A stretch of 64,000 nt of DNA from Azolla caroliniana (Eukaryota; Plantae; Polypodiophyta), in contig JBHGNT010000064.1 of the NCBI GenBank assembly GCA_043228905.1, forward strand, positions 78,738-142,737. The letters run 5' to 3'. Positions 1,566-43,568 of the stretch are shown here, one piece after another (the stretch's first letter is position 1; each line of letters opens with the position of its first letter). The position numbers and the translations under genes are program-made. A model generated the notes under the pieces. It did no database searches and was not told the origin of the DNA. It saw nothing but the letters and a program-made list of their open reading frames with translations.

Positions 1566-1575
1566 GTGGTCGCCA
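1566..1575 (-). promoter_or_regulatory. PBS, tRNA-Arg(UCG)-type (TGGCGACCAC)
   Basis: Lies 5 nt inside the LTR; complementary to recalled plant tRNA-Arg(UCG) 3' end GTGGTCG-CCA; same motif at 13764-13773 and 46122-46131. Confidence 0.7.
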
Positions 1576-1580
1576 AAAGG

Positions 1581-2044
1581 TGTTATAATCCTAGGGGCCG
1601 GACAACAGCCTAACACAGGGTGTCCACTTAAGACACTTCACCAAAGGGTGGTACGACAGAATGACTTATGGCACAACGCTTAATTAGACCTTAATCGGTT
1701 ACTTAGCAATCCATAATTAACATGCGTAAGATATAACAATGAATACAGAACGGTAATCAACACTGGGAGATTAAGACAATAAGCTTTATTAATTATCCGC
1801 TCCTGATTACATTGTAACCGGGCCTTTTATAGGTCTCCGGTGCGAAATACAAAACGGTGCCAACCGGCACCTTTACGGAATCGGTCTGGATCCGGATTGG
1901 CATACCGATTCCGGTCCGTCCGTCCACATCTTCTCATATATTAATATCTATATTAAGATTACTAATTACAACAGTTCCCGAATAAACTATTCCTTTTCAC
2001 ACTCTAGTTTGGACCTCCTTAAGCCTTCTTGCCAGCCGGTAACA
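1581..2044 (-). repeat. 5' LTR of non-coding element copy 1 (464 bp)
   Basis: Minus strand reads TGTTACCGG...TATAACA with TATA box CCTATAAAA near 1830. Confidence 0.75.
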
Positions 2045-2566: not shown

Positions 2567-3022
2567 TGTTACCCGGACCCGGACAGTCAGTTTTACTGAA
2601 CAAGTGGGAAAGCGTCGAAAACGGAGTCGGTTCGGATCGACTGTTCGGATCGATGACTCAGCAGTGAACGAAGAGAACTAAGTTAGTTAGATAATTTTGT
2701 AATTCTTGATAGTAAGTAGGAATAGTTCTTGATGAGAAAAGACCTTCGGTATACCTATAAAAGGGAACCGAAGGCATTGTAAGAAAGGTCGTTTATTTAG
2801 TAATATAAGTTTAAGTTAGGAATATCATGTACGGATTCTGTGTTCTTTCTATTGTCTATTTTGTTAAGTGCAATCTTCCTAATTTATAACTAAGTAACGA
2901 TCACGGTAATTACCGATTAATATAGTATATTTCTGTTCGTAAAACACAATTCCTTGTTAGAACGTTCAGTAGCGACGTTCACTCTTCTGTATCGGTAGTA
3001 GTTAGTAATTAGCCGATTAACA
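2567..3022 (+). repeat. 5' LTR
   Basis: TGTTACCC...TTAACA; TATA box CCTATAAAA near 2754; matches 10421-10876. Confidence 0.95.
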
Positions 3023-3033
3023 CAGAAGAAATT

Positions 3034-3045
3034 TGGCACGCCCGG
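3034..3045 (+). promoter_or_regulatory. PBS, tRNA-Arg(UCU)-type (TGGCACGCCCGG)
   Basis: 11 nt downstream of the 5' LTR; matches the recalled Tat-type Arg PBS. Confidence 0.8.
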
Positions 3046-3081
3046 TTACATCTGCAATTAAGCAGAGAACAAATCGAATGG

Positions 3082-6000
3082 ATGTCGTCTGAAGAGGAGA
3101 CACCGGTCGGTTGTAAGCGCCCTCGTACAAGGTCAGTTACGAAGGAAGTGCAGGAAGCGTTCATTGCGCAAGAACAGCCGGAATCAAGCACAAAGTGGTC
3201 GAAACTTCCTGACTTATCCGATCAATTACCTTCAGACGAAAAACAGACGAAGAGGTATCGTTTTACGACATTTGGGACGATATGCCTTATACTTATTCTA
3301 AGTTCCGGGAAGGAACAGATGCGGAAGCACATGTTAGGGATTTCTTAACGACATGGGAGAGTAACCATGGAGCTCAGCGATTGTCGGCAGATGCCGAAGA
3401 TAAGTCAAAAATCGCTGAGTTCGTCTTATCATTAGACGGATATTCCGCCAATTGGTTTGCGCAGAACGGTCTTCAAGGATTTCCATCCTTTGAAGTGTTA
3501 ACTAGTAAATTTTTACAATTATTTCATCGACAAATTCCGCAGAAGGATTTGATTGCGCAATTTTATGCGTTATATCAAGAAAAAAATGAAACAGTATCTC
3601 AGTTTGTGATACGATTTCAAAACTTACAGCTTCAGATTTCAAGGCCGATTCCGGATAATGAATTAAAAGAAGTCTTTCTAGAAGCTGTAAAAGAACCATT
3701 AAGGACGACATTGAAAGTGTTTGATTTTCGAAATCAGACTATCGAACAAGTAATTGATAAAGCAATAGAAATGGGTCGACCACCGGTCAATGTTCAGAGT
3801 ATGGACATGTCGGCATTACAACGTACATTACCAACAATAGAGGAGTTACAATTTCGTCAAGCAGTTCAATGCACCACTTGTTTAAATACGGGGCATTCGG
3901 CAATTGAATGTACGTTAAGAACACATTGTACAATATGTCATTCAAAATTACATTCAATAGAACAATGTGAATATAATCTGCTTAATAAAACTACGGCGTC
4001 AGTACGACAAATTTTTACTGACAATGGTTACCAAAATAACACTAATCTGTTCAATGGTTATCAAAATAATAATTTTTCACAAAATCAGCAAAATGTACAA
4101 CAAAATCCAACTTTTCAACAAAATCCGGTTCTACAGCCAAATCAGATCTTTTCACAACAAAATATGCAACCCACTCAAGAGACTCAAGCATTTCAACCAG
4201 GTTTTGCTCAATCCAACCCACCATTCGTACAGAATCCGAATCAATATTTTCAACAAAATAATCAAAGTTTCCAACAAGGTAACCCACCATTTCAAGGGTT
4301 TCAACAGAACTGTCCGAATGTGCAACCGAATTCTGCATTTCAACCGAATCCGGCATTTCAACCGGGTAATATGACCTTTCAACATAATACTCAAACCTTT
4401 CCACAAAATAATCAAATGTTTCAACAGAATAATTTTCCGCCAAATCAAGAGTTCGGGATAACACAAAATGTAGCACAACCAAATGATAATACCGAACAAT
4501 TTAGGCAGAATCGGTATAAAAATAAGAAATTTTACAAACCAAAAGCTACACGTCAATTCCAACAAAACCTGAGTGGTAATGAAGAGCAACAATTTAATAA
4601 CGACCAATTTGCACATGGAGAGACCGGTGGAACATTTGTACCCACTTGTTATATTTGTCGACAACTAGGCCATTATGCTAATCAATGTCTGGTTAAAGGA
4701 AAGGGTCCAGTAGTTAATATGGTAATACCGGAAGTTCAGCAAGTAACGACACGCAGCAAAAGCAAACAATCAGAATGGGAAATTCAGGAAGCAGTTCGGA
4801 AGGCGGCAAAAGAATGGGTTGACGAAGCAAATCAAAGTAATGTGAATCGAATGTTACAAGACAATAACATTGACCAGAACATCGCTGTACAACAGTCATT
4901 GGGGAATAAGGAACAGGAAGAAACTTGGAAACTGTTGGCTGATTGCCAAGTGTCATTGCCACTTACGGGCTTACTTAAGTTAGTACCAAGGTTTACAGAA
5001 AAAGTGGCAGCATTAATTGCATATAAAGGTTCCGAACAAATAGCAGTACACTACAATCAGCCAAGTAATAACCCTTCGATCATGGATGAACAGAATCCGT
5101 CGATTAAGGTAATACTTTACGGGCAAGAAATCGGAAATGTGATTATAGATGGAGGCTCGGGAGTTAATGTGATTAACAAAGCTACATGTGAAAAACTAGG
5201 AATCACGGAATGAGAAGCATGTCCATTTTGGTTACGAATGGCAGATACAAGTACGGTACGACCGATTGGTTTGCTTCGACAACTGGATGTAATAATCGGG
5301 GGACACAGTTTTCAGATTTCGGCAATAATTTTGCAGTTAGAAGCACAGGGAGCATACCCCTTGTTATTGGGGAGACCATGGTTAAAGACAGCTAATATCA
5401 AACAAAATTGGAAACAAAATGTGCTAACATTTAGGAAAGGAAAAACTAAGGTCAGGATTCCGACGCACAACAAAGTGACAACAAGCAAACAGAGTTTACC
5501 TGTACATGCAGAAGCAGTTAATATGATGGAAGGATTGGACGAGGAAGAAGAAAGTCAGTATTTTAATGATAATCAGAAAATCATCCCTCTATTTGAGGTA
5601 GATATTTTGCAAGCATTAACACCATATGTAGACTCACACGAAGAAGTGCCAATAGATGAGCAAACAATGAAAGAAATACGAATGCAACAAGAAGCTACAG
5701 ATAAGGAAATGAAGGTATCTCAGAGAGTGCAAGCCTCAGCATTAGAGGAGATCTATTTGGCAGGAGTAGAGGATGGTGAAAGAAAAACAGTCTTGATTGC
5801 TAGAGATTTGGCGGAAAATGACAAACGGACATTAACAACATTACTATTACAATATAAAGATGTTTTTGCATGGTCGTTTGACGATATGAAAGGTCTGGAT
5901 CCCGCTTTTTGTCAACATCAAATCAATTTGCATAAAGATGCAAAGCCAGTACAACAACGCAGGTACAGGTTGAATCCGAATTATGCTATCAAAGTAAAAG

Positions 6001-8588
6001 AAGAAATCGATAAACTCTTAAAAGTAGGATTTATTCGACCCGTCAAAAAATCAACATGGCTGAGTCCGAAAGTAGTAGTTCCGAAAAAGAATGGGAAAAT
6101 TCGCGTATGTGTGGATTACAGAAAATTGAATGCAGCGACAATTACGGATGCGTTTCCGTTACCATTCACAGATGGGATATTAGATGCAGTAGCTGGACAT
6201 GAAATTTATAGTTTCTTGGATGGGTTCAGTGGGTACAACCAAGTACGGATGAATCCGAAAGATCAGGAAAAGACAGCTTTTGTCACAGAATGGGGGTGTC
6301 TTTGTGGCAGTAGTAATGATGTTCGGTTTAAAAACAGCTCCAGCTACATTTCAACGGGTAATACAGGAAATATTCGGGGAATATATTCCAGCTTTCATGC
6401 AGGTGTTTTTAGATGATTTTGCGGTATATAGTCGGAAAGCTGATCATTTTGAGCATTTACGGCTATGTTTAGAAAAATGTCGAAAAGGGCGTCTTAGCTT
6501 AAATCCAGCCAAATGCGCATTCAGAGTAATGAGTGGTACGTTACTTGGGCATATTGTCAGTCAAGAAGGGATTGCAGTGGACCCGGACAAAGTTAAAGCA
6601 ATTATTGAGGCAACACCACCGACAAATGCTAAAGCTCTAAGTAGATTTTTGGGTCAAATTCGGTGGCACAGTAGAATGATTAGATATCTAGCAGACATTG
6701 CTATTCCGTTACACATAGCAGTACACAAAGTTCCTTTTATATGGACAAGTATAGAACAAGATGCATACGAATGTCTCAAGAAGATGCTGACAAAGGTTCC
6801 GGTAGTCCAACCACCGGACTGGAACAAACCATTTCATGTTTTCGTCGATGCGTCGGACATTGCCATAGGCAGTGCTTTAATGCAATTATCCGAACCAAAC
6901 TGGTATAGGCCGGTATACTATGCCAATAGGAAACTTTCGTCGGCCGAAAGAAACTATTCAACAACCGAAAGAGAAGCTTTGGGAATGATATATAGTGTGA
7001 ACAAATTTCGACATTACCTTTTGGGTAAGAAATTTACATTTCATGTGGATCATTCGGCTCTACTGTATCTAGTTTCCAAACAAGAATTGACAGGCAAGTT
7101 AGCCAGATGGACGTTATTGCTTCAAGAGTTTGAATTCGACATTATACATCGACCAGGAGCATAGCACGCGATTGCTAACTATCTCAGTCGGCTTGAATCT
7201 GGAGAAGAAGCGGTTGGTGTTAAAGATGATTTTCCAGATACTCAATTATTTCGGGTTGAGGCAGTAAAAGCACAAGAAATGAATGAGGAAAAAGAGGATG
7301 AATGGATTTCCGAAATGATGATATTTCTATCAACAGGAATTCCGGCCGAACACATGTCGACAGATGAAAGAAAAAGAATTGCAGTACGAAGTCGAAATTT
7401 TTGTTTATTTAATGACATGTTGTATCATAAAGGAGCGGATGGAATATGGCGAAGGGCAGTACGGAAATTTGAAAAATTAGCCATATTAACAGAGTCACAT
7501 TGTGGAATTGCTGGCGGTCATTACGCAGGAGAAGCAACAGCCAGAAAAATATGGAATAGCGGGTTATGGTGGCCAACGATGATGAAAGATGCTAACGAAT
7601 ACTGTAAGAAATGCGATTTGTGTCAAAGAATGGGGCAACCGACCGAAAAGGATCGAATGCCTTTTCAACCGGTTTTACCTCTTGAGCCATTTCAGAAATG
7701 GGGCTTAGATTTTGTTGGCCCATTCAAACCAGTAGCTGCAAGAACCGGTAATCGATATATCATAATTGCGACTGACTATTGCACAAAATGGGTTGAAGCA
7801 AAAGCTCTCAGAGACAATACAGCAGCATCCACAGCAAAATTCCTGTATGAAAATATATGGTGTCGATTCGGTTGCCCAATAGAATTGGTAAGCGATCAAG
7901 GCACTCATTTTATTAACAAGTTAATTCACGAATTAACCAATTATTATGCCGTAGTTCATAAGAAAAGTACGCCTTACTATCCCCAAGCTAATGGATTGGC
8001 AGAATCGACAAATAAAACAATTCAAACAATTTTAAAGAAGATAGTGAATGAAAATCGTACTGATTGGGATCAAAAGTTAAATAGTGCATTATGGGCATAT
8101 CGTACTTCGTACAAAACATCCATTAAATCAACACCTTTCCGAATGGCATTCGGACTTGAAGCTGTTATGCCGATCGAATTTCAAATTCCGACACTTCGTA
8201 TCCAAGCGACGAATAAGTTAAATGAAATAGAATTGGAGCAGATACGCAAAGAGGCTTTATTAGTATTAGAAGAAGAACGGATTCAATCAATGTCAGCACT
8301 AGAACACAAGCAGAGACAAATCAAGGCATTCGTAAATCGACATCGAAGGAAAGCGGAAGAGCAATTCGAAATTGGGAAACCGGTATTGGTATTCCAGACG
8401 AAAATGGGACTTATGCTTGGGAAACTCCGGTATAGATGGACAGATCCAGTATGGATAATTAATAGTAAAAATGGTACGTATCAGCTGGGATCATTAACCG
8501 GAGAGGTTTTACCGAAATGGGTAAATGGATTCCGGCTTAAACCGTATTTGGGAGATATGCCGGTAAACCCGTTTATTCAAACGGAAGA

Positions 8589-8592
<4 letters not shown>
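3082..8592 (+). pseudogene. gag-pol polyprotein (Gag with 3 CCHC knuckles, protease, RT, RNase H, integrase), lightly disrupted
   Basis: Motifs IIDGGSG (PR), DVFAWS/CVDYRKLN/FLDDF (RT), VDAS...EREAL (RH), HxxxxxGH...CxxC and DFVGP/SDQG (INT). Stops at 5211 and 7162; frameshifts near 3270 and 6295. Confidence 0.92.

Positions 8593-8619
<27 letters not shown>
8591..8619 (+). repeat. Poly(A) tract (29 A) starting within the pol stop codon
   Basis: Read directly from the sequence. Confidence 0.95.
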
Positions 8620-8621
<2 letters not shown>

Positions 8622-8672
8622 AACTAACTCACTCAATAGCAGTCGACAGAAAATCGACAACAAGCAGAGAAG

Positions 8673-10376
8673 ATGCCACAAAGGACAAGGGTTAAACAAA
8701 AGGCTAATCGGCAATTCCAACCAGAAAACAGTGATGAGTCAGCACCGAAAAGGCAACGCACAAAGGAAAATTCGAATACGCCTGTAGTAACAGAAGTAAT
8801 AAAACCAGGGAATGAGAGCGTTTCGACACAACTTCAACAAGGACAATCTTCAAAAGTAGCAATTCGGGAAGCACATGGGTGCCTGGATATTCCACCAGCA
8901 GCACATGAATTAGCTGCCATTTTACAGTTCGGAACTTCATACGAACTGGTTGAATGGTTGGCTAGAAGATTGACAGAAGTATCAGAACGGCTGGCTCAAG
9001 AACATCATGACCGAATAATGATACAGAAGTCCTTACGAGGAGTGTTGGAACCTCAAGAAAAAGCAGAGATAGAGAAAATCGGCCGGAAAAGAAATGCACA
9101 GAATAGAGGGGAGGCTATTGAAATGCCACCATTACATGAAGCACTGGTCGAAATTCATAGAGAATATGAAAAGGCACGCAAAGCAGCCAGTGATATGGCT
9201 GAAAGATACAAAAGTGTATCAGCATCGGCGGAGGTGCTGAAACGTCAGTTTTGTAACATACAGACAGAAAATAAAGAACTAAAAGAAATTCTAAACAAAT
9301 CGGAAACACAGGCATGACCTATGGTGTCGGAGTCAGAATGGTAGCAGAAATTGGAGGACGCCGAGAAAGCACGTCAAGCAGAAACAACAAGGGCCAACAA
9401 TGCTGTATTTCGAACTACAGAATTAGAAAAACAAATAGAAACCATTCAGAATGGCCAATACAAAGTTCTCGAAGAAAAAAATCAATTAATAAATGAATTA
9501 CAGAAAAATCTGGAAGAAGCTAAGACGGCCAATCATACATATACCGAATAAATTGAGGAATTCGAAAGGTATATAGTGTCACAGGAAAGTCAATTGACAG
9601 AAAAAGAGTGGAGTCTTGAAGAAGTCAACAGAAGAATTACGGAACAGCAGGAGGAATGGAGCAAAGAGAAATCGGCATTCGAACAACAACTGAACGAAAT
9701 CCGGAAGATATCGGAACAAAGGCGGCTGGACATATATGTAGTCGAATCCAAACTAATGCAGGCTGAAAGTGAAAACCGAGCCACCATTACGGATTTACGG
9801 AAAGAGTTGCAAGCCGCTCAATTCGACGCAAGCATCACTAAGGACAAAGTGCAGCACAGCATAGGGAAACATTGAAACCTAGCAAAGAAAATGATCGACG
9901 AATCCCTTGCGCAAGGATGGAAGTTATGGACGGCACAAGCGGCGGAATTACAGTTATTGCGTGCCGACAAAAATAACCGTCAGGTCCAAGGTGCAGGTTT
10001 TTTTAAAATGGCACAAAAGGATATTGACAATATCCAAGAGGATATCATGAAAGATATGGACGAAATTGCGGCATTTTACAGAGAAGAAATTCAACGTATT
10101 ATGCAAGAATTCGACAAAAATGATATAGGCACTTCCGTCTAGTTGGATAAAATCGAAGCCGAAAGAACCAGCAAGACTCCTGGTCTTCAAGCTCCCGGAA
10201 GAAGTGAACCAAAGCAGCCAACCGAATCACAACATTCAAAACCTGCTCCGAATGACGACTGTGACACAGATGAAGATGAAGATGAAGAGGAAGATATAGA
10301 TGGAATACATCCAAGGCCAGAAGAGCCTTCGATTTTTGATATTCTGAACGATTCGGATGAAGAGCTACAGGAATAG
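8673..10376 (+). pseudogene. Extra (third) ORF of the gypsy element, ~567-aa coiled-coil protein with acidic C-terminus
   Basis: ORF pieces at 8673, 9351, 9576, 9891 and 10143 are all in one frame, separated by point stops; E/K/Q-rich heptads; no signal peptide or TM segment seen. Confidence 0.8.
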
Positions 10377-10378
10377 GC

Positions 10379-10418
10379 GTGGGTTCGCTGGACAAGGTCC
10401 TGGCCCACGGACGTGCCA
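10379..10418 (+). other. tRNA-Arg 3'-half-like module (inverted PBS) at the PPT position
   Basis: GTGGG-TTCG-CTGGACAAGGTCCTGG-CCCAC-GGACGTG-CCA, then AG, then the 3' LTR; no purine tract. Confidence 0.8.
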
Positions 10419-10420
10419 AG

Positions 10421-10876
10421 TGTTACCCGGACCCGGACAGTCAGTTTTATCGAACAAGTGGGAAAGCGTCGAAAACGGAGTCGGTTCGGATCGACTGTTC
10501 GGATCAATGACTCAGCAGTGAACGAAGAGAACTAAGTTAGTTAGATAATTTTGTAATTCTTGATAGTAAGTAGGAATAGTTCTTGATGAGAAAAGACCTT
10601 CGGTATACCTATAAAAGGGAACCGAAGGCATTGTAAGAAAGGTCGTTTATTTAGTAATATAAGTTTAAGTTAGGAATATCATGTACGGATTTTGTGTTCT
10701 TTCTATTGTCTATTTTGTTAAGTGCAATCTTCCTAATTTATAACTAAGTAACGATCACAATAATTACTGATTAATATAGTATATTTATGTTCGTAAAACA
10801 CAATTCCTTGTTAGAACGTTGAGTAGCGACGTTCACTCTTCTGTATCGGTAGTAGTTAGTAATTAGCCAATTAACA
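10421..10876 (+). repeat. 3' LTR
   Basis: Matches 2567-3022. Confidence 0.95.
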
Positions 10877-11232
10877 AAATGTGATGTGCACTTGGTGGAC
10901 TAGATAGAGGTACGTGAAGAATAAGTGAAGGGAGTAATGGGCATTGAATAGGACGGCTAGAGGAGTGAGAGTTATGGCCAATGATCTCAAGATCGAGATC
11001 AAATATTCTCCTTTGAAAAGGAGAAGGGGGTTTGACCACTCTTGTAATGTGCCTCACCCCTTACTACGATAAAAGGGAGTGAGGGGTCACTTTGGAAGGG
11101 GTTGCCTATTTTGGGTAAGGGAGGCATACCACTTAGGTCAAGGGTTTCCTATTCGGTTTTAGGGTTTCAATTAGGTTTTCTTGTAGTCATTGGGTGCGGC
11201 CTATGGGGGGCCATGGTTGTAATGCGTGTGGT

Positions 11233-14200
11233 TGTTGTAGGTTTTAGGGTTAGGGTTAAGGATGATGAATGATAAAGATAGACATGGTGGTCATGATGAG
11301 GATGATGAAGAGCATGATGATGAGAGATCGTATAGAGAAGCATAGAGAAGCATTGCGGGGTGGGGGATGGTGCCTAGAATGGCTCCACCCCCCTCCCAAG
11401 GGGATTCAACGTTGAGGGGAGAGAGAGAGAGAAAGAGGGATGACAAGAGAGAGATTAGGAGAGAAATGGTTTATTCTTCATTCATTCCCCATAAGGGGTT
11501 AAATAGTACAAGAGGGGGTAGTTACAAAGGGGTGTAAGCCCCATAGAGCATTCATACTGGACACTCACTCACACCTCATCGTATCCCTCCACATGCACAC
11601 ACGTGTGCATGTGTTCACATACATATCAACTCACAATTACATTTATGTTCCCTACACATATACAACATCATCATGATAATATTCGACCCTCGCTCATCAC
11701 ACTTGACTCTCCGTACAACTCGTACGGGGTAACACATATGGCACGCCCGTGGGAAAGTGCGTTGCACGTCGATCCCACATGCCTTGATGATGATATCTCT
11801 TCGACCGGAACTTCCATCGGTCCTTTCAACGATCGATTCCCTCGATCGGAGCGCTTGACTCGATCATCTCCATCGGTCAGCGACTTTTCCGCGACACGAA
11901 CATTCTCATTCTGTCGTCTTACGAACTTTGGTATCCTCTTTCGGGTCCTTAAAAATGTTGTGTGCATGTATGTTATTCTTTGTTGATTTTGTGAGTTGTC
12001 ATGGTCGATCACGTCCATTTCTTTAGGTGGATGAGATTTCAAAATTTCATAGGTGCCCTTTGATTTTTAAAATTTTCTTATATACCCTCAGGTTTTTACA
12101 ATTATGTTTGATACCCTCATCTTTCTTCTTTCCTTCTCTTCTTTCCCTCTTCTTTTCCATTTCTGTTACTACTTCTTTCTTTCTTTCTCGCCTGCTTTCT
12201 TCTTCCTCATTCTTTCTTCCCGTTCTTCCTTATTCTTCCGTGTATGCCTTTCTCTCTCTTCTTTCTGTCTCTTCTTTCTGTTTCTCAGACTACATCATCT
12301 TCTTCTTTCTCTTCTTCATTCACCACTGCTATGTCCATTGTCCATTGCTTCCCATCCTTCTACTCCCTGTCGTTTCCTGTTTTCTTCTTCCTCTTTCTAT
12401 TTCTCCATCTTCTTCTATGCCTATCGCTTTCTTGCTTCTCTGTTTCTGTTTCTTCTTATTTTCTTCGTATTTCTTCCTTTGTTTTGACGCATCCCGTCGG
12501 CCTCCTGTTAGGTCTGCGCTTGTGGTGGTTGTCGGCTCTTCCGAGGTCTCTGTCTCTCTATTCATCCACTGGTTGTTGTCCGGCCATCCGTTGTCCGATC
12601 GTCGTCCCATTCCGGCCGTTGTTTGGCGGTTCTTTGTCCAGCCCGTCTGGCCACTCCGACCACTGTTCGGCTATTCTAGATGCTGCGGTCGCTCCTCGGC
12701 CACTGTTTGGCCGTCGTGGCCATCTCCGACCGCTGCTGTCGTCCTTGTCCGGCAACCTCCATTCCGACGCCGTTCGGCCACTACGACCGCTCTTAGGTCG
12801 CTCTTCCGTCTCTGTCGGTGTCTGGTCGTCTGTCTATTTCTCTATCTCCGTAGCGCTTTTGGTATTGATGTCAACGACCCTTCGGTCCCGGACATTCTGT
12901 TCATTTGTCCGGCCCATTCCGGTCAGTCTCTGTTTGTCACCATCGCTTTGTGATTGGCCGCCTCTATTCGGACGCATATCCCACCGCGACTGTTTGTTCT
13001 TTGTCATTGTTTAGTTCGTAGCTCGGTCCGGCGCCATTCAGCCACTCCAACTGCTCTTCGGTCGCTCTCCGGTCGGAGCTTTTCCGGCTTCACCTCCATC
13101 TCTATCTATCTTGGTGCTGTCGACCGCTCTTCCGCTTCTATCCGGTGATACCGGCTTCCCTATCGTCCCTGTCCGGTGCCTGTGTGCCTTCTGTCCGGCA
13201 ATGTTGCCCCATGGTCGCCATTGTTAGTCTCGTCCGGTATTCGACCTAGGGTTTGCTCGTGGTTTTCTGGTGTCTCTGGTCCTCGATGTCTGGTCTGCTT
13301 TTGCATCTCCTTCTCCGTCTTCTATGGCCATTCGATGTGAACCAAGTCTGGTTCTTGCTCCGATTCCGGTTTCGACTCTTTCTGCGTTGCTTCGTCTGGA
13401 ACCATCTCTCGTGCACTCTCAGCACATCCTGCCGGCCTCCGCTCCACACACTGCGTCTTTTCCACCGCAGTCTCCTGGTGGGCTTCTCTTACCGGTCGTG
13501 CTTGCACCGGTTCTCTTTGCGTCGCTGTTTGTCCAGCCGTGCATCTTGCACCACGCTTCGAACACGCACATTGTCACTAACCGCATTCGGAAACACGTAC
13601 ATGGACACCAATCGCAACCTTACATAAACACCGTTCCATTCATGAATTCTTTCATCGCATTGTCATTTCCTGTACTCACACAAATATGTCGCTATGGCCT
13701 TCGCTATGGCCTTCATCACCGCGTATCATTCTTTGACTCCGTTTCCAAAGGGGGGTCGCCGTAGTGGTCGCCAAAATGTGTTGTAGGTTTTAGGGTTAGG
13801 GTTAAGGATGATGAATGATAAAGATAGACATGGTGGTCATGATGAGGATGATGAAGAGCATGATGATGAGAGATCGTATAGAGAAGCATAGAGAAGCATT
13901 GCGGGGTGGGGGATGGTGCCTAGAATGGCTCCACCCCCCTCCCAAGGGGATTCAACGTTGAGGGGAGAGAGAGAGAGAAAGAGGGATGACAAGAGAGAGA
14001 TTAGGAGAGAAATGGTTTATTCTTCATTCATTCCCCATAAGGGGTTAAATAGTACAAGAGGGGGTAGTTACAAAGGGGTGTAAGCCCCATAGAGCATTCA
14101 TACTGGACACTCACTCACACCTCATCGTATCCCTCCACATGCACACACGTGTGCATGTGTTCACATACATATCAACTCACAATTACATTTATGTTCCCTA

Positions 14201-14280
14201 CACATATACAACATCATCATGATAATATTCGACCCTCGCTCATCACACTTGACTCTCCGTACAACTCGTACGGGGTAACA
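11233..14280 (-). mobile_element. Non-coding, non-autonomous LTR element, copy 2 (3048 bp, very young)
   Basis: 502-bp LTRs 11233-11734 and 13779-14280, identical by eye; TSD GTGGT; minus-strand PBS 13764-13773; tRNA-like module 11739-11783. Strand inferred from the TATA-like motif and from analogy to the autonomous element. Confidence 0.93.
11739..11783 (-). other. tRNA-Arg 3'-half-like module (inverted PBS)
   Basis: Minus strand GGCAT-GTGGG-ATCGA-CGTGCAACGCACTT-TCCCAC-GGGCGTG-CCA, 4 nt from the LTR. Confidence 0.8.
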
Positions 14281-14477
14281 GTGGTGTTCTTCTTAATACA
14301 AACCATTTGTGTATCTTGCCTCCATCATTTTCTCGTTCAATGTTAATGTTTTATTCCTCCTCCTCTTGAGCTAAGATTCCATTTCTTGTCTTACTCTTTC
14401 TCTTCTACTCCCTAGTCCAAGAACCCCGTGGTCCCGCCTCGGATCCTACATGCGCTCGCGGAATATCACGACATCTT

Positions 14478-14490
14478 TGGTGAACCCGAC
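14478..14490 (+). promoter_or_regulatory. PBS, tRNA-Trp (TGGTGAACCCGAC)
   Basis: 4 nt after the LTR end at 14473; complementary to recalled plant tRNA-Trp 3' end. Confidence 0.85.
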
Positions 14491-15685
14491 ATGAAGAGGC
14501 GTCAAGGGAGGACGGAGATGGAAGAAGACTTCGACTTCGCCGAGATAATGGCAAAGATTGTGATGGATGCCGAACGGAAGAAGGCGAAGCGAGATGCGGC
14601 TCAACAAGCCGTCGAAAGGGTGCTTGGTTGAGTCGGCCGGTTCAACGGGGATGATGCCCCAAAATGTTTGGGAGCTTACAATGCCGAAATGATGGAGAGG
14701 GGCGTGGATGAGGCGATGCGGCTAGATTTTTTTTGTTGAGTGGCGGCCGTATCGACGCACAAAGAGGTCAAGGAGCTTCGAGAAGCTCACGAGTCTTGGG
14801 AGTCCTTCGAGGGAGCTCTATTGGAGGCGTACGGGTACGAGAAACTGGAGGGGCGAAGTCGGCAAGAGTTTGATCTATGGGTGGCGTCGGCCAATGGAGG
14901 CATTCCGAGAGTTCGAGCGTCGTTTCTCTCGACTCTCGGAGCGGGATTGGAGATCGGTGGGGGCAGACAAAGTCCTCCTATTTTTGAAGATGGTCCATCA
15001 AGAGAAAAGAATGGACCTCCTATTCGAGCTTCAAGATGATTACGGAGCACACGGTCTCACCGAGGAGTGTTCCGAAGTAGAGTGGGTGTGCCAGCAACAT
15101 GATGCGAGGCAGTTGGCCACAACACGGCCCGCAAGTGGTGGAGAAGGGAGAGCGGTGAGTGACTACACACTACCGATGGAAGAGAGCTCGGCGCGTAATG
15201 ATATGGAGGAGTGTGACCTAGAAGTGTTGATATGGGAGGCATACGAGAGCATGAAGGCAAAGTTCGAAGCCAAAGAAGGGCTTATTATGGAGTCGGGCCG
15301 CAAACGATCGAAGGATGTGGAGGAAGAAGCCTCCCTCTGCGTGGACGATGGGGCCTATGCGGAGGCCAGGAGAGCATGCAATGGTGACGACGTGGGAGAG
15401 GGTGCGGAGCAAGCGACCCTCTCGTCTTGCGGAAAAGGGACGGCCATAGATGAGGCCAGTGACTACGAAGCGGGGAGCGCCACTTCGAGAGTGGGTGGAG
15501 GATTCGGGACACGATGGCCCGAAACATCGAGCGGGGAGGAGACGAGCGGTGGTGTCGGGACCTTACCCACACCGATTCCAGAGACTCCGACGTCCGGCCC
15601 GAGAGCCGGTGTGAGACCTAGAGTGACGAACGGTGGCGGCGGGAAGGCGGGCAACCAAGACGACGGCAAGGAGATCGAGGAATAG
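14491..15685 (+). pseudogene. Degenerate gag-like ORF of the Trp-primed non-autonomous element
   Basis: VGRFNGDD resembles IGQFSGKD in the related element's gag near 26850; stops and a frameshift; runs into low-complexity sequence. Confidence 0.55.
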
Positions 15686-18600
15686 GAGGAGGCAAGCGTA
15701 ATCGAGGCTTCCGCGATCGGAGACGGGGTAGCCACGAACAACGACATCCGGATAGAGGTGGCTACGGACATAATGAGCGGCGGTGCCAGGATCTTACTCG
15801 CACCAGTTCTAGAGACTCTGGCATCCGGCCCGAGAGCTGGTATGAGAACTCGAGTGACGGACAGTGGCGGCGGCAAGGCGGGTGAGGTGACAGAAACAAA
15901 GGGGGGGATGCGAGGCTTGGAACGGGCATATACGAAAGGACCGAAGGGGAGGCCGAGAGCGGCAACAAGGAGAGAACCGACCCAACCCGACTGGAAGGCG
16001 AATCGGGAAAGAAATGAAGTGGGGGCTGGTCAACCGGGCCCGAACCGAACAAGAGCCGGCAAGACCGGAAGTGTTCGGCTGAACCCTTACTGGCCGGTTA
16101 CGATTATGGAAGCAAGCCGACCAAACCGGCACAGATCTGTCGGGACCAAGCCGGGAAAGGACCAAGCCGGTATGATTGGAGGTCGAGGTGTACAAGCCAC
16201 AACGCACGGTGGGAGCCGGTGAGTGCGAGGAGGTAACTGGGCACGACGACCACGGTTCGGTTGACGACCCTCCACACCTATGCTGAGACTCCGGCGGTTG
16301 TGGATCAACGTAAGGCCGGAGAGAAGACGGGTAGCGGTGAGGAATCGGTTACCGGAGCGGGTATCCGGTGCGGGAAGACGGGCGAGTGGGACCAAGAGGG
16401 CCAAACGGAGTTAGAAGGGGTTATGGCAACAAGGGAAGAAGAGACCGACGCAGAGGATGAGTCTATGACGGATGAGGGGCGTAACACGAAGCATGCATTA
16501 TGGCCGGCGGAGGGCCAAAGAACGAGCATGCACCTGGAGAAGCGGCAACAAGTGACCGGCAAAGGCGGACCGATCGAACCTTTGAGAGGCAAGTACGAGA
16601 CGGAGGACGAAGCGGTGAGGTGCTAGGGTTGACGGATGAACGGCGAGAGCGAAGGATGGTGCGTAGACGACAAAGGGCTACACACCGGGCAGAGAAAATG
16701 CGGTGTCGAGGAAATCCTCGCAGATGCGTAGAAATTGGGCAGGACCACGGGGGTCTTGAACCAAGGAATCGAGAAGTGAGGAGGTAGAGTCTATGGTTTA
16801 CGTGAGCCCTGAGACCGCGGTTTACACAGAAAGATTAGCAAAACGAGAGAGATAGTGTAAGAGGAACGTGCACAGACACAAGCGCAGACAGATATGCTAA
16901 GACTAGCTTGCGTTCGGTAGATAAGCTTCTATTAATCAATATATGTGCGTGGCGCTGTGGGTGATTACAACCGGATCAGTGCCGATGTTCAAGCGTAGTC
17001 AGATACGGAGATGAGTGGGCACACAAAAGGTCGATCCCTTGGTCGGGAGCACTCGGCCATCTGACGCGAGCAGGGGAAGCGCCTTCCAGTGGCACGTCGT
17101 AGGACTCCTTGTCTTCTTTGTTCTCTGTTTCCCTTTCTCCTCTCTCTAAAATTGACATCCACAAAAACAGTCGAGGGTCGGCCCTTTTATAGCACAAGGA
17201 GTGACCGTTACAGAGGATTCATGGCCTTGTCGCTTTAACTCCCTAAATTCCCCTCCCCCCCCTTGATTCTCTCTCCTCGTAACTCTCCCTACTTACGTGA
17301 TGTTTGAATCCCTATTAATGCTTGAACAACCTAGTACACCTCCTTTTTCCTATGCCTAGCCCTTACACTATCTAATTCACTAGAGGTGTGCACTCGTGCA
17401 CACCAGTGCTCCCGCTTGTTTCACATTCTTTCTACCGATGGCCCGGAATCTTCATGACATCCACCCCCACTAAACCGCACATACTCCGTTATGTGCCGGG
17501 CAACGATTTTAGTGAGGGATTCTGGGCCATCTGCTACTCGCCCTCCCCCTCTGAACTGGTCCTTTTGGCTCATGGGTTCGGTTCTGCCTCACTCCGCCTT
17601 TTGAAGGCCTTTATCCGCTTCCCGGCCACTGGAATCATCATTCGGGTCCCGTCGAGCTTTGCGAGGTGATAAGTTGTGTTATTCTTGACGCCGATTACCA
17701 CATATGGCCTGAACCATCGCTTTGTGAACTTACGCGTAGACCTATGCTGGTTTTTGAGGCTGCTATCTTAGACTAACACCCAATCGCCTTCCTCGATCTT
17801 CCTTTGCTGGAGCCGGTGTGTCTGGTCGAACCGGGCCTTGCTCCGGATTCTCACTTCTTTCACCCTTGCCGTGGCCCGCTCTACATCTTCTAGCCTTCGC
17901 TAGAGTTGCCAGATCCGGGCCGCAAGCAATTCTTCTCGGCTAATTTCGTTGGCCCAATCGATCGTCGTCCACGAGGCAGTTGTCCGCTCTATTTGCATGA
18001 TGGGTTTTTGTCCGAACATTAGTTCTGCCGGCATGTACCCTGTCACCGAACTGTGGGTAGTCCGGTCCGCCCATAGCGCGTAAGGGAGCAACCTAGGCCA
18101 ATCGCCGACTTGCCCTTCGCACGCGCGTACAATGGCCTTTACAATCGGACTGTGGCCCCGCTCTATCTTTCCATTTGCCTCCGGGTTGTACGCCGTTGTG
18201 AGGGACAGTTTTACACCTAGCCGATCGAACAGTTCTTCGGCCTCTTCCGTGTCTAGCTCTCCTTGGTCCACCACGATTTTTCCGATGCACCCATATCGGC
18301 CTATGACATCTTCTATCAGAAACTTACATATTGCCGCGGTGGTCTTGTTCGTTAGTGCTTGGCCCTCTACCTGGTTCGTTAGGTCTTCTCTGGCTAGCAC
18401 CATGTATCGCTTCTAACCCTCTCCCATCGGCATGGTTACTAAGTCTACCATCCATTTGAAGTGCACGGCCGGGGGGTAGGTTGGGTGCAGCTCGTCGCGG
18501 TGTCGAACGACCGAGTGCATTTGGCAGCTTTCGCACGTGGACAGGAAGTCGTGCACGCTCTTATACATACCCGACCACCAATATCTCTCCTTTATCTTCT

Positions 18601-19519
18601 CGAATGTGGCCCATTTGCCCCAATGTCCAAACCAAGGGCTTTCGTGGAACTCCGATATTAGCTTCTCTTGATCATCTGCCCGCGCTATTACTCGGAGCGG
18701 CACGTCGTTTCCCCTTTTTGGGACCTTCCAAATTTTCCCGTTCCATAAGAAGTACTAGTATGCCGTTTTTCGGAGCCGTCCCGCCTCCTTCCTAGTCATC
18801 GCGGGGTCCGCCGTCATTGTTTTTAGAAACCTTCCGATTAGAAGCCACTCCCCGTTGTAGTCGTCTTTGTCGAACTCGTTTAGGGGCAGAGAGCTTCTCC
18901 CTTTTATCCTCATCCTTGCTGATTCGAAGAAATCCGTGCCGACTTCTTCGTTCTCCGATACCATGCCATCCTCGTCCTCGAACCTTGCTCTGGAATGCAT
19001 ATCGGCCATGGCGTTGTCTTTACCCGAGATGTGTCGTATCTCTAGGTTCAGGGACTTGATGTACGCAATCCACCTAAGCATGGCCAGGTCGGGAGTTGCG
19101 CATCCGTAGACCATACCGAGAATCGGCAGGCAGTTTGTTTCTATAATCACTTCTGTTCTCATTAGATAATCTTTGTCGACCTTAACCGCCGAAACAATAC
19201 CCCATAGCTCACGCTTGACTTGGGCATATCCTCGTTGTCGCTCACTCAGTACCTTCGCACCGAACCGGATACGGAAACGCGTGCCATCTTCGTCATCTTG
19301 ATTTACGACCCATCCGATCCCGGTTGGGCTGGTGTCCACCATGATGTAGACCGGAGTTCCCGGTGCGTATTCTGCTTTGCTTAAAGCTGGTGCCGTGGTG
19401 AGCGTTCGTTTTAGCCTCCGGACCGCATCGGTATGCTCCTTTTTCCATTCAAATTTCCTGCTCTTTTTTTGCAAGCCATAGAGTGGTTCGGCGACGCGCA
19501 CGTAATGAGGGATCCATAT

Positions 19520-20491
19520 TGTTGGGAAACAGGTCCCTCCGGATGGGAAGGGAGAAGAACAGTGCCAATGAACAAACTCGGCCGAGGCCGAAACCGGATG
19601 AGGAGTATTCGGCTACGGAGAGCCGGATGGTGCAGGCCCGGTATGAACCAGATGAGGAGTACCCGGCTACGGAGAGCCGGATGGTGCAGGCCCGGTATGA
19701 ACCGGATGAGGAGTACCCGGCTACGGAGAGCCGGATGGTGCAGGCCCGGTATGAACCGGATGAGGAGTACGCGGCTACGGAGAGCCGGATGGTGCAGGCC
19801 CGGTATGAACCGGATGAGGAGTACCCGGCTACGGAGAGCTGGATGGTGCAGGCCCGGTATGAACCGGATGAGGAGTACCCGGCTACGGAGAGCCGGATGG
19901 TGCAGGCCCGGTATGAACCGGATGAGGAGTACTCGGCTACGGAGAGCCGGATGACACAGACCCGGTGAAGACCGGATGAGGAATACCCGGCTACGGAGAG
20001 CCGGATGGTACAGACCCGGTGAGAACCGGAGGAAGAGACATATTCGTAAATATGTTTCTGAGAGCCCATTGAGGCTACATTTGTAAATAGCTAAAAAGTC
20101 ATATTAGTATAAATATGACTTAGGGCAAACTTTTAGAAGTTAGTGTTGTCATTTTCTTGTTGGTGCAAGAATAGAGAGTGTGCGTAACTGTACAGAGAGA
20201 GAGAGAGAGAGAGAAAGAGGTCGTTGCCTCTGTTGTAACCGCCGCCTGTGGCGAAGATCCGTGAGCACGAGGTCGGTGCCTCAGTGAACTCACTGTTGTA
20301 CATACTTACATAGTGACAGTTTTGCAGCCTGTGGGCTGCCGTGGTTTTTCCCCTAGTTTGGGGTTTTCCACGTAAACATCCTGTGTACCATTTCTCTTCT
20401 TTGTGTCGCGTTTTATTTCTCGTTTTTTGTGTATGAAAAGAATCTCGGTTGTGGCCGAGCATTGGACATAAGGAGCCTTGAGTTCTCGTCA
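19520..20491 (+). mobile_element. Solo LTR of a Tork-like copia family
   Basis: TGTTGGG...GTCA; TSD CATAT; homologous to the LTRs at 22245, 35324, 53645 and 56812. Confidence 0.93.
19594..20025 (+). repeat. 54-bp tandem repeat x8 in LTR U3
   Basis: Unit CCGGATGAGGAGTACCCGGCTACGGAGAGCCGGATGGTGCAGGCCCGGTATGAA. Confidence 0.95.
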
Positions 20492-22244
20492 CATATGTGG
20501 TAAAAGGCGCATGCTCCTAAGAATCGTCGGACCTCTGTGACGGATCTGCACTCCTCCTTCATTGCCGAGATGGCCTCTACCTTGGTCGGCGATGGCTTCC
20601 GTCCGTACGACCCACATAGATGGCCCACCACTAAGATCTCTGGCTGTCCGAAGGCCGACTTTTCTCCTGAGAAGGTAAGCCGTGCGCCCTCGAGCCGCTG
20701 CAGTATTTTCTCGCAGTCAGAGATATGGTCGGTGACAAACCTTCGGCACCCATCCGCGCCGATCGATTCATCCTTGGTGTCCTTCGGACACCCCTTGATA
20801 GGGATGTCTTCCAAGAAAGGCATGGTGATGTCCGGAATGCAGTCCCGCAAGACTCTATTCATTGCATTTACCATGTGTGCCACCGAGTTGGTCCCTCCCT
20901 ATGGTAGGGTACACATTCGAACTAGGCCGAGAAGGGTTCGCATTGTTGTGATGTCCCTGCTTTCCATGGCCAGCTGGAACTGGTCGTACCCTGAGTAAAG
21001 GCCTCCGACCGAGTATATGGACCTTCTGGCGAAGGCTTTCACGAACTCATCGATCGACGACCCAACTCCCATATTGCGGATGGTCACCTTGTTGACCGGT
21101 TGTAAGTCATGGATGAAGCGCAACGTACCGTTCTTCTTTGGTACCGTAAACCACCGGTTAGAGTAAGGGGCACTCGATGGTTCGAGGATGCCCAACTCCA
21201 CCTTCTGCTTAAGAAGCTCCATCAACATGGGCATGTGAGCTCTCGACACTTGAATCGGTTTGAGGCTCCATGGCACGTGCGGCACGGTAAAGATCACCAT
21301 TGGTTCAACAATGGTCAGGTCAACGCACCCGATCTCTCTCGGCGAGAATGTGAAGGCTTTCCCGTGCCTCTCGAGCATCCTTCTGAACCGGTCCTCTTCC
21401 GCCGGCAGTAGGAAGCCACCCCCACCGATCTTTAGTGCTCATAGCGTTTTGTCGGTGAAACAGGGTCCTATGCCGGACGGATCTCGCAAGCTTGGGTCGG
21501 TAGCAACCCCCTTTATTCGTTCCTAGTTGCCCTTCGGTAAGGGAGCCACGACGGGCTTCACCTTCCAGTCCACAGTCTTGTACTTGGTGTCTACTCGGGC
21601 AGTCCGATGCGCCCTGGTTTTTCTTTCAAAGTCCGCAATGACTTCATACATGTTGACCGAATTGACCGGTATGACTCGGTCTTTGCTTAGGCCTTCTTCG
21701 ACTACCTTCCCGATTTCTCCAAGGGTGTCATCGAATGAGACTGCCTCCACGGCTTCCCCAATTCCTTCGACGTGACTCAAGGCTCCGCACGCCTTTAAGC
21801 GTATCTCGGCCTATTTTCTTTCTCGGCCATTGATGCTGGCTATGGTACATCCCCCGTTGTCGGAGAACAAAACTTTCCTCCCTATTTTATAGGTGTGGGG
21901 AATTTTCTGGCTATCCGAACTATCGCAACCCCATGCCATGATAGCCCTTTCTAAAAATCCGCCTTGTTGTGGTGTCCTGGTTCCGCTCGTGATTCTTCTG
22001 AATGGTAAAAAATTGGACGGAGTGACGACCGTCCTGACTTTTTACCCTCGCATAGGCTGAACCATTGTCCAACACTTTCATCTCCATTCTTGCCGTCGTG
22101 ATGTATGGTTCGCCGAGGATGACCAGGTGGGAGGACGTCTCTTGCACGAAAAAGTGTTGGTTTATATCGACGTCTCCGACGCTCACCCTGACGTTCGGGC
22201 AAGGTCCGTGTAGTTCTTCCATGGCCCTTGTAGCCGCGCGTATC

Positions 22245-25200: not shown

Positions 25201-25794
25201 GAGTCGAGATATTATCTTCATGGAGAACAAGACACTCGCCGATTGGGAGTCGGAGAAGAAGATAATGAACTCCGAGTTGACCGGTAATGATCGATTCTAC
25301 GACGAGCAGACCCAACCGGCAAGAGACCGGTTAGCACTCGAGGAACCAGCCGGTTACGGTGAGGATACCGAACCGGCAGAAGAAGTAGAGGAAGCTGAAA
25401 CCGGAACCGGCCAAGACCCCGAATCGGATTCGGATGAAGAGCAAATGGAGGAGCCGATTATCGATGCCCGAAGACGGAGATATCCTCTTAGAGAGAGAAG
25501 GGCGCCCCGGAGATTTCCGGATGCAGAGCATGTTCTGCTGACCGATGAGGGGGAGCCGAAAAGCTTCAAAGAAGCAAAGGATGACACCCACAACCACAAA
25601 TGGTTAAGTGCCATGCAGGATGAGATGGATTCCCTGCATGAGAACCATACGTACGAATTGGTGGAGTTGCCGAAAGGAATGCGGGCACTCCGAAACAAGT
25701 GGGTGTACAAGTTGAAACCGAGAGATGCCGGCAACCCTCTGAGATACAAAGCCAGGATCACGGTGAAGGGGTTCCAGCAGAAGAAGGGTGTGGA
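22245..25794 (+). mobile_element. Tork-like Ty1/copia, 3'-truncated within RT
   Basis: 5' LTR 22245-23054; PBS-Met TGGTATCAGAGC 23057-23068; gag from 23084 (CFYCGKPGHFQKNC), PR WVVDSGAS, integrase, start of RT. Confidence 0.9.
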
Positions 25795-25963
25795 CAGAGA
25801 TACACCTCGATTCTCTCCCTATTGAATGCGTGGTACCCAGGATTTCACCTTAGTCGACTTGTACCTACCTACTTACTATACAACGAAAAGTGTGCTCGCA
25901 TGTAAGGGCCGGTTTACACGTGCTAAACTCGGTTTCCGCCTAGGGACGGTTTTCTTCACGACA
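25795..25963 (-). repeat. LTR remnant of another Trp-family gypsy
   Basis: Ends CTTCACGACA like the LTR end at 27773; interrupts the host protease at KTKHG. Confidence 0.55.

Positions 25964-43523: not shown

Positions 43524-43568
<45 letters not shown>

Follow-up and report, generated by a model that had tools for sequence, protein, structure and literature searches.

Introduction

Non-autonomous long terminal repeat (LTR) retrotransposons of the large retrotransposon derivative (LARD) and terminal-repeat retrotransposon in miniature (TRIM) types include pairs such as Dasheng with RIRE2 in rice. LARDs have a non-coding internal domain and a total length above about 4–5 kb, and TRIMs have LTRs of about 100–250 bp and a total length well under 1.5 kb. 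To our knowledge and in the papers searched, the second DNA strand of each LTR retroelement investigated to date is begun at a polypurine tract (PPT) that withstands RNase H. Related ways of priming or initiation are the self-priming of Tf1 and Sushi and the CCA-ended terminal tRNA-like structures of plant RNA viruses and the Mauriceville retroplasmid. Here we describe an element at positions 11233–14280 of a 64,000-nucleotide stretch of Azolla caroliniana DNA (contig JBHGNT010000064.1, positions 78,738 to 142,737), which is referred to as the window and to which all positions without a locus name belong. The analysis identifies this element as a non-autonomous LTR retrotransposon with a tRNA mimic as its putative 3' priming signal. 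A first-pass annotation, made from the letters of the window only, had described the same stretch as a recently mobile non-coding LTR family with two inward-facing primer-binding sites (PBSs).

Results

Anatomy and orientation of the element

Two relatives served as references: the complete autonomous element at 2567–10876 of the window and L003, a metagenome contig found by an integrase protein search; other loci compared here also carry L numbers. The features of the element and its insertion site are as follows.

11228–11232: left copy of the target-site duplication (TSD) GTGGT, the same 5-mer as at 14281–14285
11233–11734, minus strand: 3' LTR, reading TGTTACCCCG...CCTACAACA on the minus strand; oriented by homology to L003 and 2567–10876
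11735–11738, minus strand: 4-nt spacer from the module CCA to the 3' LTR, TATG on the minus strand (CATA on the plus strand), read from the sequence
11739–11785, minus strand: tRNA-Arg(UCU) 3'-half mimic (the module), about 47 nt; recognised by its L003 match, its tRNA match and covariation
11778–11774 with 11753–11749, minus strand: module helix P1, GTGGG/CCCAC
11767–11764 with 11760–11757, minus strand: module hairpin P2, GTGC/GCAC
11748–11739, minus strand: module tail GGGCGTGCCA, ending in CCA; its complement is TGGCACGCCCGTGGGA on the plus strand
11786–13719, minus strand: non-coding interior, A/G-rich on the minus strand, with no open reading frame (ORF) longer than 123 amino acids on that strand
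13720–13763, minus strand: conserved 5' leader after the PBS, TACGGCGACCCCCCTTTGGAAACGG... on the minus strand, 80% conserved in the family
13764–13773, minus strand: PBS TGGCGACCAC, 100% conserved in five family members
13774–13778, minus strand: 5-nt spacer from the 5' LTR to the PBS, CATTT on the minus strand (AAATG on the plus strand), read from the sequence
13779–14280, minus strand: 5' LTR, 502 bp, pairing with 11233–11734
14281–14285: right copy of the TSD GTGGT, the same 5-mer as at 11228–11232
28666–29206, plus strand: paralogous target without the insertion, belonging as an LTR to an older outer element and equivalent to the empty site; identified by its sequence match to the flanks

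The two LTRs, 502 bp each, are identical without a single mismatch (100%) and form direct repeats with TG...CA ends, TGTT...AACA being read on either strand. They are bordered by a perfect 5-bp TSD, GTGGT, within the usual 4–6 bp, which occurs as a single copy at 29017–29021 of the paralogue. The left flank (10877–11232) corresponds to 28666–29021 at 98.9% identity and the right flank (14284–14473) to 29017–29206 at 96.3%, and the two matches overlap by exactly the 5-bp TSD. Since the overlap in this empty-site alignment (28666–29206) is exact, the boundaries of the insertion are certain and the insertion is young. The element, 3,048 bp in total length, is thus a recent insertion, in agreement with the recent mobility proposed earlier from LTR identity and the perfect TSD. 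The LTR repeat stops short of the AAAGGGGGG tract near 13748, which had been named as the place where the true LTR boundary might lie.

No Pfam match was obtained for any ORF of at least 60 amino acids in the element, no minus-strand ORF exceeds 123 amino acids, and tblastn with the proteins of 2567–10876 gave no match to it. The gag, protease, reverse transcriptase, RNase H and integrase ORFs of an autonomous Ty3/gypsy element are missing from 11233–14280, which, in the absence of any coding match, is therefore non-autonomous; its description as non-coding was correct. With LTRs of 502 bp and a length of 3,048 bp it is not a TRIM, and at 3,048 bp it is not a LARD either; it is best named simply a non-autonomous LTR retrotransposon.

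Compared with the minus strand of the element, L003 is colinear at both junctions: the module and LTR start match over 51 nt at 92% identity, and the LTR end and PBS over 26 nt, also at 92%. In the complete element 2567–10876, the module lies in sense orientation, 2 nt ahead of the 3' LTR. The LTR of another family member in the window, copy 1, is related to that of L003 in the same orientation (L003 4926–5030 corresponds to window 1925–1823 at 71%). The interior of the element is 37% A and 31% G on the minus strand, i.e., 68% purine, and resembles the A-rich sense strand of the autonomous element. The homology to L003 (integrase and ORF3) and to 2567–10876, the LTR of copy 1 and the purine strand bias together place the element on the minus strand, and we regard this orientation and the anatomy listed above as very probable from these comparisons. 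It had been claimed that the layout holds whichever strand is transcribed; this freedom is lost, as colinearity with L003 (integrase and ORF3) and homology to 2567–10876 fix the minus orientation.

A tRNA-like module at the position of the polypurine tract

Immediately ahead of its 3' LTR, the element has no PPT: the last 19 nt there are CCCACGGGCGTGCCA followed by TATG. The last 15 nt of the module are fixed as CCCACGGGCGTGCCA, where the longest purine run measures 3. In the 120 nt before the CCA, the longest purine run had a median of 7 vs 8 in control windows of the same module-bearing loci, so that no enrichment was found there.

The module was compared with a full tRNA on L005, one of the module-bearing metagenome contigs described below; ARAGORN calls it tRNA-Arg(TCT), and it ends with GTGGGTTCGAGTCCCACCGGGCGTG plus CCA. 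In 11233–14280, which is copy 2 of the family in the window, the module matches positions 49–76 of this tRNA at 25 of 28 positions, covering the T arm, the 3' strand of the acceptor, the discriminator and the CCA of tRNA-Arg(UCU). It departs from the tRNA in two ways: a hairpin interrupts the T loop after its TTCGA, and one C is deleted where T stem and acceptor meet. We conclude from this match that the module derives from tRNA-Arg(UCU). It is only a 3'-half mimic and not a tRNA gene: a full cloverleaf was recovered neither by ARAGORN, which found no tRNA in the window, nor by Rfam (RF00005), which gave no tRNA match in 10300–14400 even at E-values up to 10, and Rfam detected no known RNA family in the element region. 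At L005 itself (1190–1265, plus strand), the complete tRNA-Arg(TCT) with CCA lies at the extreme end of the contig, about 460 bp from a module at a 3' LTR junction (716–770, minus strand) and antisense to it. Either an insertion has landed beside a real tRNA gene, or read-through of the entire primer tRNA has lengthened the PBS of a very short non-autonomous element.

Over 51 nt, the module is 92% identical to the one that follows ORF3 in L003. Metagenome contigs were scanned for the pattern CCCACNGNCGTGCCA, followed by 2–5 nt and TGTT, which yielded 120 loci. About 50 of these show the design GTGGG-TTCGA-4-bp hairpin-TGT-CCCAC-GGGCGTG-CCA-2 nt-TGTT; they come mostly from one ENA assembly series, evidently with DNA of this plant group. 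Across 51 distinct modules, 95% of the cells of P2 are paired and three of its four pairs show compensatory changes, the variants being GTGC/GCAC, GGAC/GTCC, GGGC/GCCC, GCGC/GCGC and GTAC/GTAC. The observed covariation score was reached by none of 500 shuffles, and pairing dropped to 35–57% in slid controls. P1, the equivalent of the T stem, is paired in 92% over the 51 modules, its 3' strand being fixed by the search pattern. Folding of single sequences was not significant for most modules (z between +0.6 and -1.5; L003, z = -3.5), and for the fold of the module only the comparative covariation test is convincing. Between the CCA and TGTT, 45 of the 51 modules have a spacer of 2 nt and six a spacer of 4–5 nt. 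The element studied here shares the features that mark the lineage: a sense tRNA-Arg(UCU) 3'-half module with P1, covarying P2 and CCA, located 2–5 nt before a 3' LTR that starts with TGTT.

The summed word depth in the contigs of two DNA runs was about 92,000 over 11710–11850, 13,000–27,000 over the LTR and 100–250 over the interior, and loose contig ends at 11736 and 11779 flank a shared unit of about 44 nt. As the depth is highest at the module, the module is common to far more copies and families than the body of the element.

More distant relatives have a PPT. In a relative from Riccia sorocarpa (L002; integrase 44% identical to that of 2567–10876), PPT and LTR meet as AAAAGGGGGATAA and TGTTACCC, and the PBS is TGGCGACCATGC. 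In one from Adiantum nelumboides (L001; 47%), they meet as AGGAAGGGGGGCA and TGTTAACCC, next to an Athila-type PBS, TGGCGCCGTTGCC. Both have a purine tract of 10–11 nt directly at the LTR. Because these integrase relatives keep the PPT, the module appears to be a derived replacement within the Athila-like lineage. A module-like match in Adiantum (...GGCGCCA-A-TGTTGG) was dismissed as chance, as the element there has a normal PBS and PPT. At L124–L127, four further integrase relatives with 48–56% identity, no clear LTR junction could be read.

Two forms of the primer-binding site

The two sites named by the first-pass annotation were found where it had placed them, TGGCACGCCCGTGGGA starting at 11739 on the plus strand and TGGCGACCAC at 13773–13764 on the minus strand. 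As it had noted, they lack complementarity to one another and relate to different tRNAs, one to tRNA-Arg(UCU) and the other to a tRNA ending in ...GTGGTCGCCA. Only one of the two inward-facing sites stands as a PBS, namely TGGCGACCAC; TGGCACGCCCGTGGGA is the antisense of the sense-strand module of about 47 nt and not a second PBS of the element RNA.

Placed 5 nt inside the 5' LTR, TGGCGACCAC does not vary within the family, and it is homologous in position to the PBS of autonomous relatives. In L003, L058, L111 and L118 the same site, as TGGCGACCACGA, is found between the LTR and gag-leader-like sequence. TGGCGACCAC has three exact matches in the window, all at LTR junctions; at up to one mismatch it occurs eight times vs 3.2 expected, a number reached by 4 of 100 shuffles and thus no enrichment. 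For TGGCACGCCCG, five occurrences with up to one mismatch were found vs 0.58 expected. By its position and conservation, TGGCGACCAC is very probably the real 5' PBS of the element RNA, for a tRNA ending in ...GTGGTCGCCA. Among phage tRNAs sharing the matching 3' end, as collected in a scan of viral contigs, 19 of 25 are Arg, which bears only indirectly on the tRNA of this plant. A paper on human endogenous retroviruses (HERVs) labels a PBS identical to TGGCGACCAC as Arg or Trp depending on the database. Text searches for the PBS 10–11-mers returned only primer lists and this HERV paper, and neither string occurred in the supplements of a plant LTR survey.

Next to LTRs of the module type, the PBS takes two forms. 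The form TGGCGACCAC occurs in L003, L058, L111 and L118, which have leaders of the autonomous type, and, with the non-coding leader, in L045, L073 and the three window copies. The form TGGCACGCCC is followed by GG in L017, L025, L087 and 2567–10876 and by TACG in L039, L084 and L090; L069 has a near-identical variant, TGGCACACCC, then TACG. Homology to this family's leader extends to those of L039, L069, L084 and L090, the 10-mer being the sole difference: in the pair compared, one reads TGGCACGCCC-TACGGCCTACCCCCCTTGAGAAGAAGTC and this family TGGCGACCAC-TACGGCGACCCCCCTTTGGAAACGGAGTC. This leader, 13720–13763, includes the complement of the AAAGGGGGG tract, and homologous leaders stand beside the other PBS 10-mer in these four sister families. 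The tract is therefore the complement of a C-rich leader kept after the PBS and not a PPT. The primer tRNA is seen to switch as a 10-nt cassette in non-coding families (13720–13778 vs L039, L069, L084 and L090) as well as in autonomous ones (3034–3100 vs L003:5228–5300). Thus, the PBS evidently switches within an otherwise conserved context, and, since the same type of module stands beside either type of PBS, the module is independent of the minus-strand primer. In the spacer at 13774–13778, most genomic copies read CCTTT, and almost every contig from two DNA runs has the change 13777 T>G.

Family members and autonomous relatives

The following further copies and relatives are found in the window.

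43301–46645, minus strand: copy 3, TSD CTTGG, LTRs 86% identical, PBS 46131–46122, module 43843–43889
1–2043, minus strand: copy 1, its 3' part past the window start; 5' interior, PBS 1575–1566 and a different 5' LTR at 1584–2043
10379–10418, plus strand: module of 2567–10876, ...GTGGGTTCGCTGGACAAGGTCCTGGCCCACGGACGTGCCA-AG-TGTTACCC at the 3' LTR

Conservation was determined as pairwise identity among five family members, i.e., window copies and metagenome contigs. At the 3' end it amounts to 74.7% in the internal sequence upstream of the module, 91.9% in the module and 81% in the first 48 nt of the LTR; at the 5' end, to 59% in the LTR end, 100% in the PBS, 80% in the next 44 nt of the leader and 51% further inside. 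Module and PBS are the best-conserved internal parts of this protein-less family. The prediction that both sites would be more conserved than their flanks was borne out, with 91.9% for the module vs 74.7% upstream and 100% for the PBS.

The same layout had been reported for copy 3, which indeed carries both sites within 43301–46645, and the TGGCGACCAC site for copy 1, where it occurs at 1575–1566 beside a different LTR. The LTRs of copy 3 (43301–43838 and 46137–46645) are only about 86% identical despite the perfect TSD CTTGG, which suggests template switching between co-packaged RNAs or later conversion rather than age. In copy 1, the LTR at 1584–2043 (TGTTACCGGCTGGCAAGAAGG... on the minus strand) is unlike the family LTR, though the family PBS and leader are kept, and what L073 shares with copy 2 is limited to the LTR's second half and the 5' interior (93%). 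Judged from these alignments, the subfamilies exchange LTRs with one another. Copies 1 and 3 are inserted in Ty1/copia integrase-like coding sequence (2044–2400 and 43200–43300; translated flanks read by eye).

The autonomous element 2567–10876, on the plus strand, contains gag, reverse transcriptase, RNase H and integrase, has the TSD AAATG and LTRs with 97.8% identity, and carries the PBS TGGCACGCCCGG after its 5' LTR. Its module and PBS are mutually complementary over 7 + 3 bp. Elements of the Tat clade have an additional archaeal-type RNase H domain (PMC6317226). In 2567–10876, Pfam detects only RT_RNaseH and RT_RNaseH_2 and no extra archaeal-type RNase H; by this domain content, the element is Athila-like rather than Tat. 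The non-coding element belongs, as proposed, to the module-bearing, Athila-like lineage of 2567–10876. The same proposal had made 2567–10876 its partner. This candidate was rejected, since the similarity detected by blastn is confined to 27 nt at the module and 2567–10876 has another PBS, TGGCACGCCCGG. L003, whose integrase is 75% identical to that of 2567–10876, has the order integrase, ORF3 of 1048 amino acids, GTGGGTTCGAAGTGCAACGCACTTTCCCACGGGCGTGCCA-TG-TGTTGGCC...LTR...ACAACA-CTATTT-TGGCGACCACGATTCC, gag-leader-like sequence. PBS and leader context are shared with L003 (the PBS 10-mer, and 26 nt over the LTR end at 92%), not with 2567–10876. The closest autonomous partner is, from the same PBS and a 92% identical module, the L003-type family.

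A third element (30841–31150, minus strand) ends with ...GTGCCATGGCACTATCCCACAGGCGTGCCA-AG-TGTTCTCC, a module of the same kind with a 5-bp hairpin. An integrase remnant lies at 33015–32455 on the minus strand; as ORF3-like matches (36232–35131) are located upstream of it on the same strand, this region probably holds pieces of two elements. The 11233–14280 element and 2567–10876 both sit within a single LTR belonging to an older, roughly 18-kb element (LTR regions 10877–14473 and 28666–29206), which holds another LTR pair (16704–17459 and 27003–27773) with 90% identity. Arrays of 54-bp tandem repeats occur at 19538–20166, 22317–22729, 53704–54008 and 56874–57232, apparently within LTRs of other elements.

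Discussion

A proposed role of the module in plus-strand synthesis

The comparisons identify 11233–14280 as a recently inserted, non-autonomous and non-coding Ty3/gypsy (Athila-like) LTR retrotransposon on the minus strand. Its RNA would read 5' LTR (14280–13779), 5-nt spacer, PBS TGGCGACCAC, leader, about 1.9 kb of purine-rich non-coding sequence, the module of about 47 nt, a 4-nt spacer and the 3' LTR. The proteins of the L003-type autonomous family would copy the element in trans, the element contributing only cis signals, and the minus strand would be primed at TGGCGACCAC by the tRNA ending in ...GTGGTCGCCA. After minus-strand synthesis, the module RNA may pair with its complementary DNA (cDNA) as the primer tRNA does on the PBS, and be spared. 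The element's RNase H, which is already needed to cut at the end of the tRNA primer, would then cut just after the CCA of the module, and plus-strand synthesis would begin from the module RNA, a few nucleotides ahead of U3. The arrangement of CCA, spacer and TG at the module mirrors that of CA, spacer and TGG at the PBS.

Overall, the explanation we lean towards is that the module acts in cis as a signal for plus-strand synthesis. That it sets plus-strand priming at all is, in our estimate, slightly on the probable side. The specific version in which the module RNA itself serves as the primer is put forward tentatively, as a possibility that is favoured because conservation extends far beyond the 11–16 nt of a plain annealing site and includes a covarying hairpin. 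With its fold conserved, the module looks more like a cis-acting RNA than like such an annealing site. Priming of both strands at tRNA-type sites, as previously predicted, is plausible. We give even chances to the broader proposition that the lineage has replaced the PPT by a tRNA-type primer system for the second strand, in which the minus-strand PBS switches tRNAs and the plus-strand signal stays a folded mimic of tRNA-Arg(UCU).

Several points weigh against this interpretation. Two raw polyA RNA sequencing (RNA-seq) runs from a related species contained no genuine reads on the element and gave no strand information. No tRNA that fits TGGCGACCAC was found for this organism, and the label Arg(UCG) is putative. 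The L003 contig spans 3' interior, one LTR and 5' interior, and was probably assembled across a collapsed LTR. As the 3' 15 nt of the module and TGTT were set by the scan pattern, invariance there arises by construction, and the pattern would miss modules of other tRNA types and lineage members with a PPT. An acceptor-like outer helix, P0, is paired in only 60% over the 51 modules and is unsupported, and the module is therefore not a full tRNA minihelix. The spacer from CCA to LTR in this family is 4–5 nt, not 2.

The RNA-seq runs matched only about 30 nt at 11292–11323 and 13838–13869, a GATGATGA-rich LTR stretch where the reads run into unrelated sequence on both sides. These partial matches stem from an unrelated GAT-repeat transcript sharing the short repeat.

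Other explanations for the module

Among the alternatives, priming in trans survives best and is nonetheless unlikely. Here, a free tRNA-Arg(UCU) would anneal to the cDNA complement of the module and prime the plus strand, with the other tRNA priming the minus strand at TGGCGACCAC. The complement of the module can pair with the 3' end of tRNA-Arg(UCU) over 11 contiguous nt plus 5 across a 1-nt bulge, which is as good as the real 13-nt PBS of 2567–10876, and primer, spacer and LTR are mirror-symmetric, with spacers of 4 and 5 nt at the two ends. This tRNA is also available to the lineage, as sister families use it at the 5' PBS. However, annealing needs only about 11–16 nt, yet the 5' strand of P1, TTCGA and the covarying hairpin are conserved as well, as would be expected of a molecule that folds. 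In families whose PBS is TGGCGACCAC, the particle would, in addition, have to contain two different tRNAs, and full-text searches returned no case of tRNA-primed plus-strand synthesis.

Less likely again is that the module primes nothing and serves as a structural or packaging signal, e.g., for tRNA-bridged or direct contact between the 5' and 3' ends, as a site for Gag or reverse transcriptase, or as a host tRNA-processing site. The plus strand would then start from a weak or internal purine run, and upstream of the module purine runs are not enriched. In Ty3 and Drosophila gypsy, tRNA-related sites near the 3' end of the genome contribute to RNA circularisation, while cDNA synthesis can proceed without them (PMC1635307). 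The 7 + 3 bp complementarity of module and PBS in 2567–10876 would fit such a role, but in this family and the L003-type elements module and PBS belong to different tRNAs, with no mutual pairing and no bridge by one tRNA. The conserved role of the module is therefore neither pairing with the PBS nor bridging by a single tRNA. Moreover, the fixed spacing of CCA, short spacer and TG suits the end of a primer and is unneeded for packaging.

An element on the plus strand, with TGGCACGCCCG at 11739 as the PBS, AAAGGGGGG at 13747–13755 as the PPT and TGGCGACCAC as incidental, is highly improbable: TGGCACGCCCG is the real PBS of 2567–10876 and a G-rich purine run does lie near the other LTR, but this run is 23 nt away from it within the leader kept downstream of the PBS in sister families, the 11739 site is embedded in a full module and, like it, is one nucleotide short of the tRNA, pyrimidines make up 68% of the interior on the plus strand, and both junctions are colinear with L003 in minus orientation only, which together with the leader homology rules out AAAGGGGGG as a PPT.

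Implications

An abundant and recently mobile lineage thus has no PPT at its 3' LTR and carries there a folded copy of a tRNA 3' half, with the CCA at primer distance from U3. If the module primes the plus strand as proposed, this would be a mode of initiation undescribed for any retroelement. The non-coding family represents a natural "minimal vector" in which the parts that are kept, i.e., the LTR ends, the 10-nt PBS, the short leader and the module, define the cis requirements. The mismatch between the tRNAs of PBS and module in this family excludes simple pairing of the two as the conserved role of the module. Provided that both primers are indeed of the tRNA type, the protein-less family presents them as separate cassettes. 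Annotation pipelines that need a PPT or orient elements by their PBS match will reject or mis-orient such elements, since each of the two strands offers a PBS-like match.

Comparison with known systems

With non-autonomous elements of the LARD and TRIM types, 11233–14280 shares two LTRs, a 5-bp TSD, a PBS, the lack of gag-pol and conserved cis signals held in common with a protein-supplying autonomous family. In contrast to them, it fits neither size class (3.0 kb, LTRs of 502 bp), it has a tRNA-like module and not a PPT at the 3' LTR, and its subfamilies swap LTRs and the PBS cassette. As in Tf1 and Sushi, the viral tRNA-like structures and the Mauriceville retroplasmid, the element RNA would have a role in priming or initiation, and a tRNA-like CCA end would be a polymerase start. 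In Tf1, however, it is the minus strand that is self-primed, with the RNA's 5' end involved, and the viral structures are located at the very 3' terminus, whereas the module is internal, upstream of U3. Like the PPT of retroviruses and LTR retrotransposons, the module is located directly upstream of U3 at a short, fixed distance to the TG of the LTR; unlike the PPT, it is not purine-rich and has a conserved secondary structure and a tRNA origin.

The Athila-like (OTA clade) Ty3/gypsy elements of Adiantum and Riccia have the same TGTT...AACA LTR ends, a 4-nt spacer before the PBS and integrases with 44–47% identity to that of 2567–10876, and the PBS of the Riccia relative, TGGCGACCATGC, is very similar. 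They differ by the 10–11-nt PPT at the 3' LTR and the lack of a tRNA-like module, and the Adiantum PBS, TGGCGCCGTTGCC, is of the tRNA-Asp type. Full-text searches, with subscription literature outside their coverage, returned no description of a tRNA-like module or second PBS that replaces the PPT. The bipartite PBS of Ty3 and the 3' PBS of Drosophila gypsy likewise place a second tRNA-related sequence near the 3' end of the RNA, close to U3 (PMC1635307). There, the primer tRNA is bound on the RNA by sites complementary to it, and the PPT is kept. The module, by comparison, is tRNA-sense, CCA-ended and folded, stands in the position of the PPT and may match a tRNA other than that of the PBS.

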